Shown here in pieces: positions 13,221-63,564 of a stretch of DNA of 64,000 bases. Each line of letters opens with the position of its first letter. Position 1 is the first letter of the stretch. The notes beneath the pieces are model-generated. The model was not told the origin of the DNA, did not search any database, and saw only the letters and a program-made list of their open reading frames with translations. The stretch lies in the sequence record PP355766.1. One strand, written 5' to 3'. The translations under genes and the position numbers were made by a program.

Positions 13221-14358
13221 ATGAAAATTGCAGTTGTAGACAAATCACCGAATAACGTCCGCTATCAGAAACACTTCGAACTCTTCGACCATGAGGTTGA
13301 GACCTTCTTCATGGCTAGTGAGAAAGTAACCGGGCGACTGCTCAAGAAACATATCACTATCGGAACACCGGAGAACCCGTTCAATCCGGAAGATTTTGAT
13401 TACGTTATTCTGGTAGGTGCAGACCCGTTCTTGAAGTTTGCAGCTAAGAAAGGCATTTCCGATTACTCAGGTAAACGTGTTGAGCACGATGGGTACGCTA
13501 ACTGGATTGCAAGTATCAGTCCGGCCCAGCTCCACTTTAAGCCGGAAATGAAGCCTGTATTTGAAGCCACAGTAGAGAGCATTCATGCCATTCTCAATGG
13601 TCGTGAAAAACGCTCCAAGGCAGGTGATTACCGCCCGATTCAGTGCCCGGATGAAGCCGAAGCGTATGTGAAGATGGTGTATACCATGTGTCCTGGCATG
13701 ATCGCATATGACTCCGAAACCAGTGCGCTGTACTGCCGAGATGGTTACATGCTGGGGATCTCAATCTCCCACCAAGAGTATCAGGGCGTGTATATTGATG
13801 CAGACGTCATCACAGAAAATACCGTCTATTACTTACAGAAGCTGTTCGATAGCCCGGAACATGGCGTTGTGTTCCATAACTTGAAGTTTGATATGCACTT
13901 CTACTGCTATCACTTAGGTCTATCCTTTGATAAGGCAGCAGAAGAGAAACGCCTCCACGATACCATGCTGATGCACTACGCCCTAGATGAACGACGTGGT
14001 ACACACGGTTTGAAATCTTTGGCGATGAAGTATACCGATATGGGGGACTACGATTTTGAACTCGACCAGTTCAAGGAGACGTATTGCAAGACGCATAAGA
14101 TCAAGAAAGAGGATTTCTCGTATGATCTCATTCCGTTTGATATCATGTGGCCTTACGCAGCGAAGGATACCGATGCAACACTGCGTCTATCCAATTTCTT
14201 CCTGCCAAAAGTAGAAGCTAACCCTCGACTGAAGTCTCTGTATTACGATGTACTGATGCCGGGATGTGTATTCCTACAGCGTATGGAAGACCGTGGTGTA
14301 CCGATCTCCAAAGATCGTCTGAAAGAGGCTCAGGTTCAGTTAATGACTGCGCTACAGC
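13221..14358 (+). CDS. pol: T5-like family A DNA polymerase, 5' fragment (3'-5' exonuclease region)
   Basis: MKIAVVDK, AYDSETS, FHNLKFD, YAAKDTDAT; in-frame continuation at 63784-63894. Confidence 0.95.
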
Positions 14359-15645
14359 TAATACAGCGGACTTAGGACAAATTAATATTCGCGCAAGAAC
14401 TACTGGAGGCACTTCTTCTGGTGATTTTAGCTTCCGTTCTGACGGCCGACTTGATGTTCCTGTAGCAGTTAAAGTTGGTGGTGCAGCAATGCTAACCAAA
14501 GACGGGAATATTACATCTGGCTCGATGTTTGGCGGTAACCTTAACAACTATTTGACTTCTATTAAAAATGATATCACCACTGGCGATAGTAAGCAAGTAA
14601 GCAAGACTGGTGATACCATGACCGGTAACTTGACTATTAACGCTAACTTAAAAGTCGAAAATCCTAGTGGAACATTTGTTGATTTAGGTTCAGAGAACTC
14701 AGATAAGTACAGCAGATTAACCCTTGCTCGTAAAGTTGGCGATGGCGCTGCTGTGGCAATGCTTAAAATTACTCCTGAAGGATATGTGCAATTTGGTTAT
14801 CAAACTGCAGTTTCTACTCCATCTCCTACTAAGTACATCCGAGTTAAACCTGATGGTCTTGATGTAGAAGGTGATTTAGTTTTTAATCAGACCTATCGCG
14901 GCACTGAAGAGGCAGTTGATATTTCTGATAAGACCATTGACCTTAACAGTCTTATCATTAAAAGAACCGACCCAGGTACTCGTCAACTGTATAAATGCAT
15001 CTCTTCTGGTGGTGGTTCTAAGATAGCAAACAAACCCACATCTGATGGTAACTTTGTTCTCGAAGTTCTGTCTTTGCGTAAAGTTTCTGATACCGATTGG
15101 TCATGTAAGCAGACCTTTACTACAAAGAATAACACCACTGTTGGCACATATGTTCGCTATGCCCAAAATGGCTCATGGACTGCGTGGAAAGAGGTTGTTG
15201 CTGGTGTTCAACCGATCAATTTAGGCGGTACTGGAGCAACTTCTGTAGCTGCTGCTCGTAATAATCTTGGTGTTGGTGAAGGACAAACTGTATCATTCGG
15301 TAATTTAGTTACCAACGACTTAACTGCAAACGGAAACGCTAGATTGGTTGGAAGACTGAACCTTGGTTCTACTTCTGCGACTGGCGTATTACGAGCTAAT
15401 GAAACTGGTGCGGTTGTCTTAGGTTCTGCTAGTGGTCAAAACATCCACATCAGAGCAGGAAGCCCCGATACTTCTACTGGTGAAACCCGCTTTGAGCCAA
15501 ATGGAAACGTTTTAGTTGGTGGAGTTCTGACGTCTTCAGGAAGCTTGCAAGTAAATGGCGAAGCCACGATGAGCAGAAGCTTGATCGTTTCTCAAAACAT
15601 AAAGAATACTAACGATAATAGTTTTATTCTGATGGGAAAAGATTC
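14358..15645 (+). CDS. Long tail fibre, internal fragment (T4-like gp36/37 type)
   Basis: VSKTGDTMTGNL and GGTGATS.A.ARNNLG repeats; no own start or stop. Confidence 0.8.
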
Positions 15646-16875
15646 AGTTAAATTAAAAGATGCTCCAATAGATACTGACCCTTTAAGCCCGACATTTGGT
15701 GAAAAGGTATTTGAAAAGGAAGTATCTCATATAACAGGCAATCCTAAATCTGTATGCTTTAAAATGGATTCCGTTGGAGGCAAAATCTTTGCCCTTATTA
15801 CCGGGGAAGTTAAAACCTTAGGATTAGACCCAACAGACCCACAGAACGTTGTGGATTCTACAACTAAAGGCGTCTATGTTTACCAAGAAGGCACAAATAC
15901 TTGGAAGCGCGTATTTGGTAATACCGATGAAGAAAAACGTCGTATAGAGCATTTATGGACTTCTATGTCAACTGACGGAAAGGAAATATTCTTTTCATCA
16001 GCAAATTTTAAGACAACAGAGTACGCTCAGGATATTGAGCTTGAGACGAAATATCCAGAACTAATTTCTACCGCAGTTAAAAATGTTAACCCAATTCAGT
16101 ATCACTCTGATAAGCATTATCACATGATGAGTTTCCGAGCGGATGAATTTTCAAGATGGGAAACATTTGTTCCTGGACCGATGAGGTTTTATGCTGAGCC
16201 TTGGTTTGTCTGGATGGCTCGTGAAGGTAACAGATGCTGGATAAGTACAGCTGACCATGCAGTTGTCATTTATAATGATATTCTTTATCAAAAAAGAGTA
16301 GATACAGCAGCACAGGGAACTACCGAGCGCATTCTTTCGGAAGTGTGGGATAAAGGCGACGCAACGTTTTATTGCCCTCCGGTTTCATTTAACGGATTTT
16401 TGCAGTATGCTTCTGGTATCATGTTTCACGAGCCAGATGGAAAGCTGATAGGTTATTATGCATTCGATTATCGTGTTCGTGACCAGGTAACGCTTAACTG
16501 GAAACCAACTGATGTAATGTTTAAGGCGTTTCTGCAGAACCAAACCCGTGAAGAAGATTGGACTCCTGAACATACTCCAGGCTTGCGTGACCCGGATTTA
16601 CGTCCGTATCTTACTAAAATGATGCCGGATAGTTACTTGCTACAAGATAGTAATTTTGAGCACTTTTGTAAGTACTATCTCCAATTCCTTTCGGATGGAA
16701 ATGGAACACATTACAACAGTCTCGTTAATCTTGTTAAGAACAAATATCCTCGCGAAGAAAATGCATGGGAATATCTGTGGTCAGAAGTTTATAAACGCAA
16801 CATTTATCTGAGTAAAGACGCTCGTGACGCTGTCGTCCGTTTCTTTGAAGCACGCAAGAATGATTTCTATGCTAC
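15646..16875 (+). CDS. 7: Baseplate wedge gp7, internal fragment
   Basis: KDAPIDTDP...YKRNIYLSK..RD.V.RFFE.R. Confidence 0.9.
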
Positions 16876-16876
16876 A

Positions 16877-17004
16877 AGTATAGCGTCGTGGAGGTGTCAC
16901 CTTGCAGGGTGATTAACAACCGGAGGACTCCTCAGAACCTTGCCGGCAAGGGCTAACCTTCTCTTCTAACACGACGTCTTAATAGGAGAGCTGCAACTCT
17001 TCCT
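16877..17004 (-). ncRNA. Unassigned structured RNA, copy B
   Basis: Homologous to 38314-38426, with covarying P1 CGTCGTG/CACGACG and invariant blocks. Confidence 0.7.
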
Positions 17005-17009
17005 AAAAC

Positions 17010-17183
17010 TTACATTACATCATATTCTTCAACTAGATATTCGGAATAAGAGTTATTTGCTTTTAGTTCGTCTTTATACTCTTCAGCTTCATGCTTAGTA
17101 TGAAAAATTTTCCTAGGTAAAGAAAACTCGTCATATCCATATTCTAAATTCCAGTTAGTTTCTACTACAACATATACTTTCAT
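17010..17183 (-). CDS. Hypothetical protein (57 aa, MKVYVVVETNW...)
   Basis: GAGGA RBS; translated by hand; lies within the tRNA array. Confidence 0.65.
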   Translation of the reverse strand: MKVYVVVETNWNLEYGYDEFSLPRKIFHTKHEAEEYKDELKANNSYSEYLVEEYDVM

Positions 17184-17201
17184 ATTTTCCTCATAAATTT
17201 T

Positions 17202-17279
17202 TGGTATGGGTAGGAATCGAACCTACAAACCATTCAGCGCCAGGGCCTCACGCTCTACCTATTTGAGCTATCACATACC
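17202..17279 (-). pseudogene. Degenerate tRNA-like element (nominal anticodon CTG)
   Basis: Good D arm (GCTC/GAGC) and T arm (GTAGG-TTCGATT-CCTAC); bulged acceptor, unpaired anticodon stem, no CCA. Confidence 0.55.
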
Positions 17280-17285
17280 AGAATT

Positions 17286-17361
17286 TGGTGCCGGTTGACG
17301 GAATCGAACCGCCGACCTTCTCATTACAAGTGAGTTGCTCTACCTACTGAGCTAAACCGGC
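17286..17361 (-). tRNA. tRNA-Thr (TGT)
   Basis: Full cloverleaf, loop CTTGTAA, CCA. Confidence 0.95.
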
Positions 17362-17885
17362 AATTTAAATCTAGTGCAGTTATTATTCAGGTCTTTAATA
17401 ACTGGGAGAATGTCATGAAAGAAAAACCACTCTCCACCTTCTAAATTATTTTTATATTTATCATGGAAATACTTTTCCAGCTTAATAGCTTCTTGAGAAT
17501 ATCTAAATGACAGTATTTTATACGTTCTTCCGGGTGAGAATGTATTAGCGGTTGCTGCTCGCTGATCGGGCTCTATAGAACGACCGATCTTATATAAATT
17601 TGGATGACGAGTATCAACCATTATATAAATGAAGGCTTGATTGTAATTTTTGCTTATGTCAAAACAGTCTTTAAATTTTAGCAAGTTTAACGCGGCGGTA
17701 CGACAGTACAAATTCCACAATGTTTTCTTTTTAGATAATTTTTTATTTTCAAATTCTTTAATATTGTGGAGTTTAAGCATTGCCACACTTTCAATTAGCT
17801 TAGTAGTTACATCAAAGTTTGTATGACTTATTAATCCAGAATCAATAGCTAATTTAATTTGATTCCAATCTATGTCATTTCTCAT
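17352..17885 (-). mobile_element. GIY-YIG/T5orf172-family endonuclease within a tRNA array
   Basis: FIYIM...LYKIGRS...R....NT.SP...LEK.FH....EWF; low GC. Confidence 0.75.
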
Positions 17886-17904
17886 AATTTTATCCTCATA
17901 AATT

Positions 17905-17981
17905 TGGTACCCCTACCAGGACTCGAACCCGGACTACCGACCTTAGAACGATCGTGTGCTAATCCATTACACTATAAGGGC
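17905..17981 (-). tRNA. tRNA-Arg (TCT)
   Basis: Cloverleaf; CGATC-GTTCTAA-GGTCG; CCA. Confidence 0.92.
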
Positions 17982-17983
17982 TT

Positions 17984-18070
17984 TGGTGCGTCGAACGAGA
18001 CTCGAACTCGTACGGGTTTAATCCCGGGAGATTTTAAGTCTCCTTTGTCTACCAATTCCAACATCGACGC
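17984..18070 (-). tRNA. tRNA-Leu (TAA)
   Basis: Long variable arm; GGAGA-CTTAAAA-TCTCC; CCA. Confidence 0.95.
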
Positions 18071-18090
18071 AAATATCATGAGGAAGAACT

Positions 18091-37873: not shown

Positions 37874-38236
37874 ATGAAAGCATATCAAATTCTTGAAGGT
37901 GAACTTAAAGGCACCATTTACATCGAAGATGGTGATGACGCACGAGTAATCGTTTCAAAAGTTCTTAAAGAAGATACTATTACGGATGCTGAAACCTTTT
38001 ATGGCTACAAGGCGCGTGAAGTAGAAATTGAATATCAACCAACAGTAAAAGTTGAAGGCGGTCAGCACCTGAACGTTAACGTGCTGCGTCGCGAAACCCT
38101 GCTGGACGCGGTTGAGCATCCGGAAAAATATCCGCAGCTGACCATTCGTGTTTCTGGCTACGCGGTGCGCTTCAACTCCCTGACGCCGGAACAGCAACGC
38201 GACGTTATCGCTCGTACTTTCACAGAGGCACTATAA
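37874..38236 (+). CDS. grcA: Autonomous glycyl radical cofactor (Vs.6)
   Basis: [25 protein letters not shown]. Confidence 0.95.
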
Positions 38237-38312
38237 TGTCAATCGAAGATATTAAAGGATACAAGCCACATACCAATGAAAAAATTGGTAAAGTGAATGC
38301 TATCAAAGACGC
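38236..38312 (+). CDS. vs.4: Acb2 (Vs.4), 5' fragment
   Basis: IEDIKGYKPHT.EKIGKVNAIKDA; its end overlaps the start of the 54233-54433 fragment (gctatcaaagacgc). Confidence 0.85.
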
Positions 38313-38313
38313 G

Positions 38314-38426
38314 AGTATAGCGTCAGGAGGTTATGCTTGCGACAGGGAACAACCGACTAGCGGCAATGGACGAACCATTCTCTTCTATCTGACGACTCAA
38401 CGAGGGCATACGCAAGTTTCCCTTCG
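38314..38426 (-). ncRNA. Unassigned structured RNA, copy A, 4 nt after the tRNA-Thr CCA
   Basis: P1 CGTCAG/CTGACG; invariant blocks shared with 16877-17004. Confidence 0.7.
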
Positions 38427-38430
38427 AATT

Positions 38431-38506
38431 TGGTGCCGATTGCAGGAGTCGAACCCGCGACATCTTCATTACAAGTGAAGCGCTCTACCAGCTGAGCTAA
38501 ATCGGC
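38431..38506 (-). tRNA. tRNA-Thr (TGT)
   Basis: Cloverleaf; CTTCA-CTTGTAA-TGAAG; CCA. Confidence 0.95.
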
Positions 38507-38604
38507 TTAAGACGGAAATAAGGATTCGAACCTTATGTAGTTGCACAGACGTATCTGCCGTTGAATTCCTCACTAAGTTTAAGCAACTATTCCCTGGGTC
38601 TTAA
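38507..38604 (-). ncRNA. T-arm-containing structured RNA between tRNA-Leu and tRNA-Thr
   Basis: TTAAGAC/GTCTTAA, GGAA/TTCC, TAGTTGC/GCAACTA, ATAAGG-TTCGAAT-CCTTAT. Confidence 0.6.
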
Positions 38605-38606
38605 TT

Positions 38607-38691
38607 TGGTGCACCGAGAGGGATTCGAACCCTCAATCCTTGCGGCGGGAGATTTTAAGTCTCCTGTGTATACCAGTTCCACCATCGATGC
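38607..38691 (-). tRNA. tRNA-Leu (TAA)
   Basis: GGAGA-CTTAAAA-TCTCC; variable arm; CCA. Confidence 0.95.
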
Positions 38692-38695
38692 GAAA

Positions 38696-38772
38696 TGGTC
38701 GAGGCAGAAGGATTCGAACCTTCGACCTGCGGATTAGAAGTCCGCTGCTCTATCCAACTGAGCTATGCCCCG
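38696..38772 (-). tRNA. tRNA-Arg (TCT)
   Basis: GCGGA-CTTCTAA-TCCGC; CCA. Confidence 0.95.
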
Positions 38773-62990: not shown

Positions 62991-63564
62991 TTACAAAATT
63001 ATGTTTACCCTGAACCACATGGCTACTGAACTGTTTGGACCAGAATTTCTGGCTATGACAGCATTCATCTTAACTATTTAAGGAAAATTATGAAATTCTA
63101 TAAAATCTCGTCATAAGAAACTTGTTAAACACATGAGGACTTTATAATGTCTAAAGTAGATAAAAAGGTAGTAGAGAAATTTGAGATGTTCCTAGAGCGT
63201 AAGTTTGCTCCTGCCTTTGGATGAGACTGATGCCTCCGAGTCCAAAGGAATGAATTTAGCAGGTCATCTGCCAGTAGGTGATGCTGTCGATTCTCAGAGC
63301 CCTGTCTTCGGACGGGGCTTTTTAGTATAGTCCCAATTAGATTCTTCACGGGCTTTAGCACGGTTCTTTTTATAATAATATGCTACATCCCGGCGCCAGT
63401 ATCCGTTGATTGCATTATCAACACAAATGACAATTTTTGTGTATCCTTGTGATCTTCGTAAATGTCAACGCCAGCCAAAGCGCCAGTATATTGAGGATAC
63501 TGATGATTAAAGTCACCTTTATCATACCAAACACCTGAATTTTCAGGGTACTGTTCTAGATTGC

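Follow-up and report, generated by a model that had tools for sequence, protein, structure and literature searches.

A structured RNA motif that occurs twice beside tRNA arrays in sequence record PP355766.1 is probably the 5′ domain of a two-domain, structured non-coding RNA of about 240 nt, which belongs to the tRNA regions of T4-like phages and is cut by joins in this record. The underlying RNA family is unannotated and absent from Rfam 15. The window analysed here is a 64-kb stretch (64,000 nucleotides) that corresponds to positions 224686-288685 of PP355766.1 and forms the final part of the record.

PP355766.1 (Klebsiella phage vB_Kpn_AM_K4, 288,685 bp) is recognized as chimeric because the two native loci are scattered, some pieces are reversed and a length of 288.7 kb compares with ~167 kb in its relatives. 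The record consists of joined assembly fragments from at least two co-assembled Jiaodavirus strains, and in the window itself pieces of two syntenic Jiaodavirus (T4-like) genomes are joined in shuffled order. In the piece map, the native tRNA loci are present in the window as seven and five dispersed pieces, some of them reversed. Sequence common to both strains is present once and strain-specific sequence is present separately, and the final 1.4 kb is mosaic, each relative matching it at 5-8 places. Two joins bound the copies of the motif, here called A and B:

16875/16876, no strand: assembly join that cuts the copy B RNA just 3′ of CUAUACU (query split, piece map)
38312/38313, no strand: assembly join with the grcA region on its left and a JD18/JEC-type tRNA region on its right

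To the left of 16875/16876 lies the 3′ part of a baseplate wedge gene, which is 99% identical to Jiaodavirus at a distant genome position, and to the right positions 16876-18076 are 100% identical to the tRNA region of Klebsiella phage KP1079. To the right of 38312/38313, array A is 100% identical to vB_KpnM-JEC and 99.8% identical to JD18. Both copies end at CUAUACU because the assembly joins fall there, and the apparent duplication and truncation of the RNA in the window are products of the chimeric record. The doubled tRNA arrays and fused ORFs of PP355766.1 should not be read as biology.

Two chimeric ORFs, 14264-16912 (+) and 38236-38478 (+), cross the joins and continue antisense to the RNA. 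The former is a truncated baseplate wedge gene, annotated as ‘hypothetical protein’ in PP355766.1, and the latter is the start of the gene next to grcA, reading across the join.

Copy B is the longer of the two in its P3 stem and comprises the following parts:

16882-17004, minus strand: copy B, 5′ domain (sequence; match of model R1 at 16880-17010, 136 bits; pair counts)
16984-17004, minus strand: P0 hairpin, AGGAAGAG-UUGCAG-CUCUCCU (sequence)
16976-16970 with 16890-16884, minus strand: P1, CGUCGUG/CACGACG (sequence)
16970-16979 with 16882-16890, minus strand: P1a (sequence, pair counts)
16961-16963 with 16891-16893, minus strand: P1b, GAG/CUC (pair counts)
16948-16960, minus strand: P2, GG-UUAG-CC hairpin (sequence)
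16919-16947, minus strand: P3, UUGCCG...CGGUUGUU around a longer insert (sequence)
16897-16912, minus strand: P4, UCACC-CUGCAA-GGUGA (sequence)
16991-16996 with 16902-16907, minus strand: candidate loop-loop contact UUGCAG/CUGCAA (complementarity)

The minus strand of copy B also carries UAGAAGAGAA, the internal loop UUAGAA, ACCUCC and CUAUACU. The sequence blocks listed for this copy by a first-pass annotation, made from the window alone, were all found on the minus strand in their places, and its structural reading is largely correct: copy B is a second, diverged copy of one structured RNA, and the helices covary. The inner hairpin GAGG-AGU-CCUC that it drew is not kept in relatives; the comparison favours a longer P3 stem with a tetraloop. 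Array B as a whole spans 17010-18070 (minus strand), upstream of the copy B RNA, and ARAGORN, Rfam and a domain match return the gene order that had been claimed for it:

17984-18070, minus strand: tRNA-Leu (ARAGORN, Rfam)
17905-17981, minus strand: tRNA-Arg (ARAGORN, Rfam)
17352-17885, minus strand: ORF with a T5orf172/MUG113 (GIY-YIG-type) nuclease-type domain (domain match)
17286-17361, minus strand: tRNA-Thr (ARAGORN, Rfam)
17202-17277, minus strand: degenerate tRNA (21.3 bits on the tRNA model, cut-off 29)
17010-17183, minus strand: small ORF between the degenerate tRNA and copy B

With tRNA-Arg on one side and tRNA-Thr on the other, the inserted T5orf172/MUG113 ORF runs at its 3′ end into the beginning of tRNA-Thr. 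Its presence in array B parallels that of segB among the T4 tRNA genes. Such an ORF may be the reason that tRNA cassette and 5′ domain pass between phages as a unit.

Copy A and its array are organized differently:

38317-38429, minus strand: copy A, 5′ domain, JD18/JEC type (sequence; R1 match, 83.7 bits)
38411-38416 with 38336-38341, minus strand: candidate loop-loop contact CUUGCG/CGCAAG (complementarity)
38696-38772, minus strand: tRNA-Arg (ARAGORN, Rfam)
38607-38691, minus strand: tRNA-Leu (ARAGORN, Rfam)
38507-38606, minus strand: spacer of ~100 nt (no model matches)
38431-38506, minus strand: tRNA-Thr (ARAGORN, Rfam)

Copy A has CGUCAG/CUGACG as P1, a short P3 and a weak P4, and is 64% identical to copy B over aligned positions. 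The spacer at 38507-38606 (minus strand), matched by no model, contains a T-arm-like GGUUCGAAUCC.

It had been proposed that the arrays may stem from phages of two families, possibly one T5-like and one T4-like; the different tRNA order in the two arrays and the T5orf172-domain ORF in array B fit this. The arrays do come from different phage genomes, as claimed (array B matches KP1079 and array A matches JEC, both at 100%). However, both donors are filed as Straboviridae, Tevenvirinae, Jiaodavirus, nothing T5-like occurs in the window, and the two loci are syntenic, with flanks ~97% identical and a differing cassette made up of the tRNA array and the 5′ domain only. T5orf172 is a domain name only, and T4 itself has the homing endonuclease segB among its tRNA genes. 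The matches and the synteny refute the idea of donors from different families. As the first-pass annotation had foreseen for arrays that map to one locus, the cross-family argument is weakened and the covariation stands; the latter is strengthened by relatives from other genera.

The suggestion that the element continues 3′ into sequence collapsed in the assembly proved correct. The motif and its continuation are contiguous in intact genomes, where the RNA extends ~115 nt beyond CUAUACU, straight into two hairpins (H1 and H2) and a terminator, and the corresponding sequence was found on the other strand of the window:

63215-63329, plus strand: common 3′ half, a single collapsed copy with unrelated flanks (sequence match, piece map)
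63215-63248, plus strand: H1, with apex GAGACUGAUGCCUCCGAG (covariation)
63259-63288, plus strand: H2 (covariation)
63299-63318, plus strand: terminator-like hairpin, then a U run at 63319-63323

An HMM match to the 3′ half covers 63215-63294. Among Jiaodavirus genomes the 3′ half is ~95% or more identical. Across genera, the H1 stem of ~12 bp varies freely and stays paired, its 18-nt apex is invariant in five genera (EcS1 carries a variant), and H2 reads GCAGGYCAUCUGCCAGURGGUGRUGCUGUC. Changes on both sides were found in 14 of the 27 predicted pairs of the 3′ domain. In Jiaodavirus and Karamvirus, H2 is followed by a GC-rich, UUCG-looped hairpin plus a U run, and a ‘terminator’ feature is annotated under the 3′-half match in phage Mineola. 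A simple terminator scan made no call on this hairpin and U run, which are plain in the sequence. In Muldoonvirus, tRNA-Gly lies directly 3′ of H2, and in Moon another structured RNA takes this place. The 5′ domain lies 5′ of H1/H2 in all complete loci examined.

Comparison with relatives confirms that the motif is the genuine 5′ domain of a conserved, folded non-coding RNA, with a predicted structure that is well supported. Relatives drawn from GenBank phages, viral contigs and metagenomes gave ~16 distinct sequences of four types, namely type A (JD18, JEC, EnA02, EnC15), type B (KP1079, Pet-CM3-4, Moon, BovinicusUrsus and others, with EcS1 as an outlier), the Cronus type (Roskildevirus and one metagenome contig) and the Muldoonvirus type. 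The fold, described for types A, B and Cronus, is a four-way junction that is closed by P1a/P1b and from which P2, P3 and P4 branch, with the 5′ hairpin P0 outside. P1a consists of 6-7 bp and 2 more beyond a bulged base, with the internal loop UUAGAA on its 5′ strand; P1b is GAG/CUC, P2 is a hairpin, and the P4 hairpin loop is CUGCAA(A). P3 has 4 bp in type A and is a long stem in type B, capped by the tetraloop UGAG, UGCG, CGCG or UACG.

In a MAFFT alignment of 13 relatives, which was not fitted to structure, 93.1% of the pair cells were standard compared with 29-52% in slid controls, and 15 pairs were changed on both sides compared with 1-4. In the alignment fitted to R1, 93.5% of cells were paired (29-51% in slid controls) and both-side changes occurred in 27 of 39 pairs (4-6 in slid controls); some of these covariation counts are not independent events because the ~16 distinct sequences come from few lineages. 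R1 also recovers relatives that were left out of model building, namely the metagenome contig L064 (E = 1e-5) and phage Cronus (E = 3e-3). In these two, P1b is CGG/CCG, which is the sole covariation for P1b, as this helix is invariant within types A and B. Cronus-type sequences further alter most of the ‘invariant’ junction letters. P4 has only 2 bp in copy A and is weak, and the single-sequence folding energy of the 5′ domain is unremarkable (z = -1.3 and +0.8). Pairing of the P3 GGAG with ACCUCC in a pseudoknot was ruled out, as relatives have GGAG inside the P3 stem. The pattern of paired changes shows selection at the RNA level on a predicted, defined fold.

The P0 loop appears able to pair with the P4 loop, and the matching changes in the two loops argue for a tertiary contact that would dock P0 on the junction. 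The cognate loops form 6 bp in type B (UUGCAG/CUGCAA), type A (CUUGCG/CGCAAG) and the Cronus type (UUACAG/CUGUAA), whereas non-cognate P0/P4 loops among these three types form 3-5 bp only. The pairing amounts to two compensating double changes and rests on three lineages. As the loops are out of register in the alignments, complementarity was counted with a custom script. EcS1 loops keep the palindromic core UGCA alone (4 bp), and the contact is absent from Muldoonvirus-type 5′ domains.

The element is present in ~190-210 phage records, and the genera given for the loci examined are Jiaodavirus, Karamvirus, Moonvirus, Kagamiyamavirus, Roskildevirus and Muldoonvirus. In all of these loci it lies on the tRNA strand, inside the tRNA region, and after a tRNA or a small ORF that follows a tRNA; copy A follows tRNA-Thr, and copy B follows the small ORF after tRNA-Thr. 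It is usually found 3′ of the last tRNA of the array, and between tRNAs in Muldoonvirus and Moon. Among 45 metagenome stretches with an exact 18-mer match, six are in the family (L035, L038, L039, L064, L066 and L077), five of them full-length, and the remaining stretches failed the family check. A neighbour-protein search of viral contigs returned one locus only. Contigs from RNA libraries also contain the element; they are assembled, show presence only and carry no transcript-end information, and because the flanking genes are covered at similar depth they may reflect DNA carry-over or ordinary transcription.

With a query over both domains, the KP1079 element is ~86% identical to Karamvirus phages. 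A further block that Muldoonvirus phages conserve, CAACUAUGUGAGAUAGCAYAGUGAGAGAAAUCAACAACUGUC..., occurs ~60-100 nt upstream of P0 (L022 ~300-395, L023 ~295-370).

Small stable RNAs of T4 have been known since the 1970s, and one of them, rnaD, accumulates as a discrete stable RNA of ~120 nt that is processed from a tRNA precursor. At the equivalent place after tRNA-Arg, T4 carries rnaD (species 2; 119 nt, NC_000866 71053-71171) and rnaC (species 1; 139 nt), both described as stable RNAs of unknown function (PMC3014915, PMC9697503, PMC12685909). The present element is of the same kind, a small structured RNA of a T4-like tRNA cluster. Rfam 15 holds no family for the motif, the 3′ half, T4 rnaC or T4 rnaD, and searches with it (gathering score; E up to 10) found only tRNAs in the window and in the native, T4 and six related loci. 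Below threshold, the native locus gives at best a 24-bit match, which lies across the terminator and the sequence 3′ of it, and none reaches half of its family's gathering score.

The element and T4 rnaD are both small RNA genes directly 3′ of a tRNA in a T4-type tRNA cluster; they are similar in size and lie on the same strand. By eye, each has a 5′ hairpin and then AAGUCGUC, with which a closing helix that has one bulged base begins. They share (A/G)AGUCGUC on the 5′ strand and ...G(A/G)CGC on the 3′ strand of this helix (...GGCGC in T4 rnaD), and a P0-P1 scaffold may be common to both; on inspection, the AGUCGUC likeness is too short for significance alone. The element might accordingly be an ortholog of T4 rnaD that has diverged beyond easy recognition, a reading that would fit the same position next to a tRNA or small ORF and the occurrence of the two kinds in different sets of genera, Moon excepted. 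We regard it as rather unlikely. Neither R1 nor a broader model R2 (P0 and P1 only) matched any of five T4-type rnaD loci with filters off and E up to 10, the best nhmmer match of the element to T4-type rnaD had E = 9.5, and the reverse rnaD HMM missed the motif. Further, T4 rnaD folds internally into a long irregular rod, whereas the element has a four-way junction there, and T4 rnaD is without P4, without the loop-loop pairing and without the H1/H2 module, with no 3′ half after it.

Phage Moon bears on this question, as one tRNA cluster there holds an rnaD-like RNA, an rnaC homologue (E = 2e-23) and, after tRNA-Gly, the element. The rnaD-like RNA shares the blocks AAGUCGUCC, GUUCCCUG, AUCACAGCA and GGGCGCAAAC with T4 rnaD. 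Since it and the element occur together, the element is not simply rnaD. T4 rnaC has a tRNA-like T arm that sets it apart from the element, and nhmmer searches with T4 rnaC found no match to the motif or the 3′ half. Homologues of rnaC were found in Moon, EcS1 and L017, a Karamvirus-like viral contig (E = 2e-23 to 8e-26), and the existence of these separate homologues beside the element indicates that the element is not rnaC.

Several of these neighbouring RNAs are unannotated. They include the rnaD-like RNA of Moon, after tRNA-His (L007 ~86-179, a weak nhmmer match with E = 0.21), and the rnaC homologues of L017 (8493-8629), EcS1 (L010 5309-5445) and Moon (L007 474-612). A 95-nt ‘tRNA-Met’ called by ARAGORN is part of the L017 copy. 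A further conserved structured RNA of ~85 nt, GACCAYGGAAAAUCGCCGARGACC..., has no Rfam match and lies just after H2 in Moon (L007 918-1000) and after the next tRNA-Gly in Muldoonvirus (L023 650-735, L031 12940-13045). Three of its stems covary between Moon and Muldoonvirus phages.

The element also resembles a tRNA in its four-way junction, its closing helix of ~7 bp, its place in a tRNA operon and, probably, its excision by the same enzymes. A decayed tRNA gene, leaving a functionless cloverleaf remnant among tRNA neighbours, would account for these features, and a true degenerate tRNA does lie nearby at 17202-17277. We consider this origin very improbable for the motif, as neither ARAGORN nor the Rfam tRNA model (gathering score; E up to 10) matches the element and compensatory changes are found in every helix. 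Moreover, the element differs from a tRNA in its extra P1b, its long junction strands and a P0 outside the junction, and it lacks an anticodon-arm or T-loop signature.

In T4, the stable RNAs are released from the tRNA precursor by host tRNA and RNA processing enzymes. By analogy with the T4 tRNA cluster, the element would be transcribed together with the tRNAs, would be freed from their precursor by host tRNA and RNA processing enzymes and would persist as a folded stable RNA. Its invariant junction and loop nucleotides would then act, most likely by binding a protein or another RNA. The presence of invariant junction strands and an invariant H1 apex within freely covarying stems argues for such recognition by protein or RNA rather than for a passive spacer. 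When the window was scanned for possible targets with complementarity to the conserved loops, matches were no more frequent than expected by chance.

An anti-Shine-Dalgarno mimic, suggested by ACCUCC and by CCUCC in the H1 apex, is not the main reading. In the consensus both CCUCC strings have their CUC paired with GAG, and the idea was dropped for this reason; P1b is CGG/CCG in the Cronus type, and the H1 apex has CCUCU in EcS1.

The element could instead serve only in cis, as a processing platform or exonuclease barrier for the upstream tRNAs with no role of its own. Its constant position 3′ of tRNAs on the same strand, its frequent ending in a terminator and the start of the copy A P0 only a few bases after the CCA end of tRNA-Thr all fit such a function. 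However, a barrier needs no invariant 18-nt apex, no invariant junction strands and no covarying contact across six genera, and in Muldoonvirus and Moon the element lies between tRNAs and not at a transcript end. A purely cis-acting role is therefore a possibility that we hold to be doubtful. A new class of self-cleaving ribozyme or ligand-binding aptamer appears less probable still. The multi-helix junction, the invariant unpaired strands UAGAAGAGAA and GUUGUU and the tertiary loop-loop contact speak for it, and a processing site would be needed near CUAUACU if the two domains are separated. Yet searches at E up to 10 matched none of the known ribozyme or riboswitch models, no consistent regulated gene lies downstream, where a terminator, a tRNA or another RNA follows, and in Cronus-type sequences most of the ‘invariant’ junction letters differ.

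For the two-domain RNA preferred here, we tentatively entertain a further possibility, that of an undescribed phage RNA family in which a loop-locked four-way junction is joined to a two-hairpin module and which is trans-acting or a new catalytic or ligand-binding RNA. If the trans-acting reading were true, the RNA would target a factor of the host or the phage; it could, for example, bind a tRNA-acting enzyme as a decoy or partner.

In most GenBank records this region is unannotated or lies under spurious ‘hypothetical protein’ ORFs. The element gives the class of T4 small stable RNAs its first comparative, covariation-backed fold, including a candidate tertiary contact that can be tested by mutation. 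T4-like tRNA clusters carry sets of several distinct structured RNAs, with at least four in one cluster in Moon.
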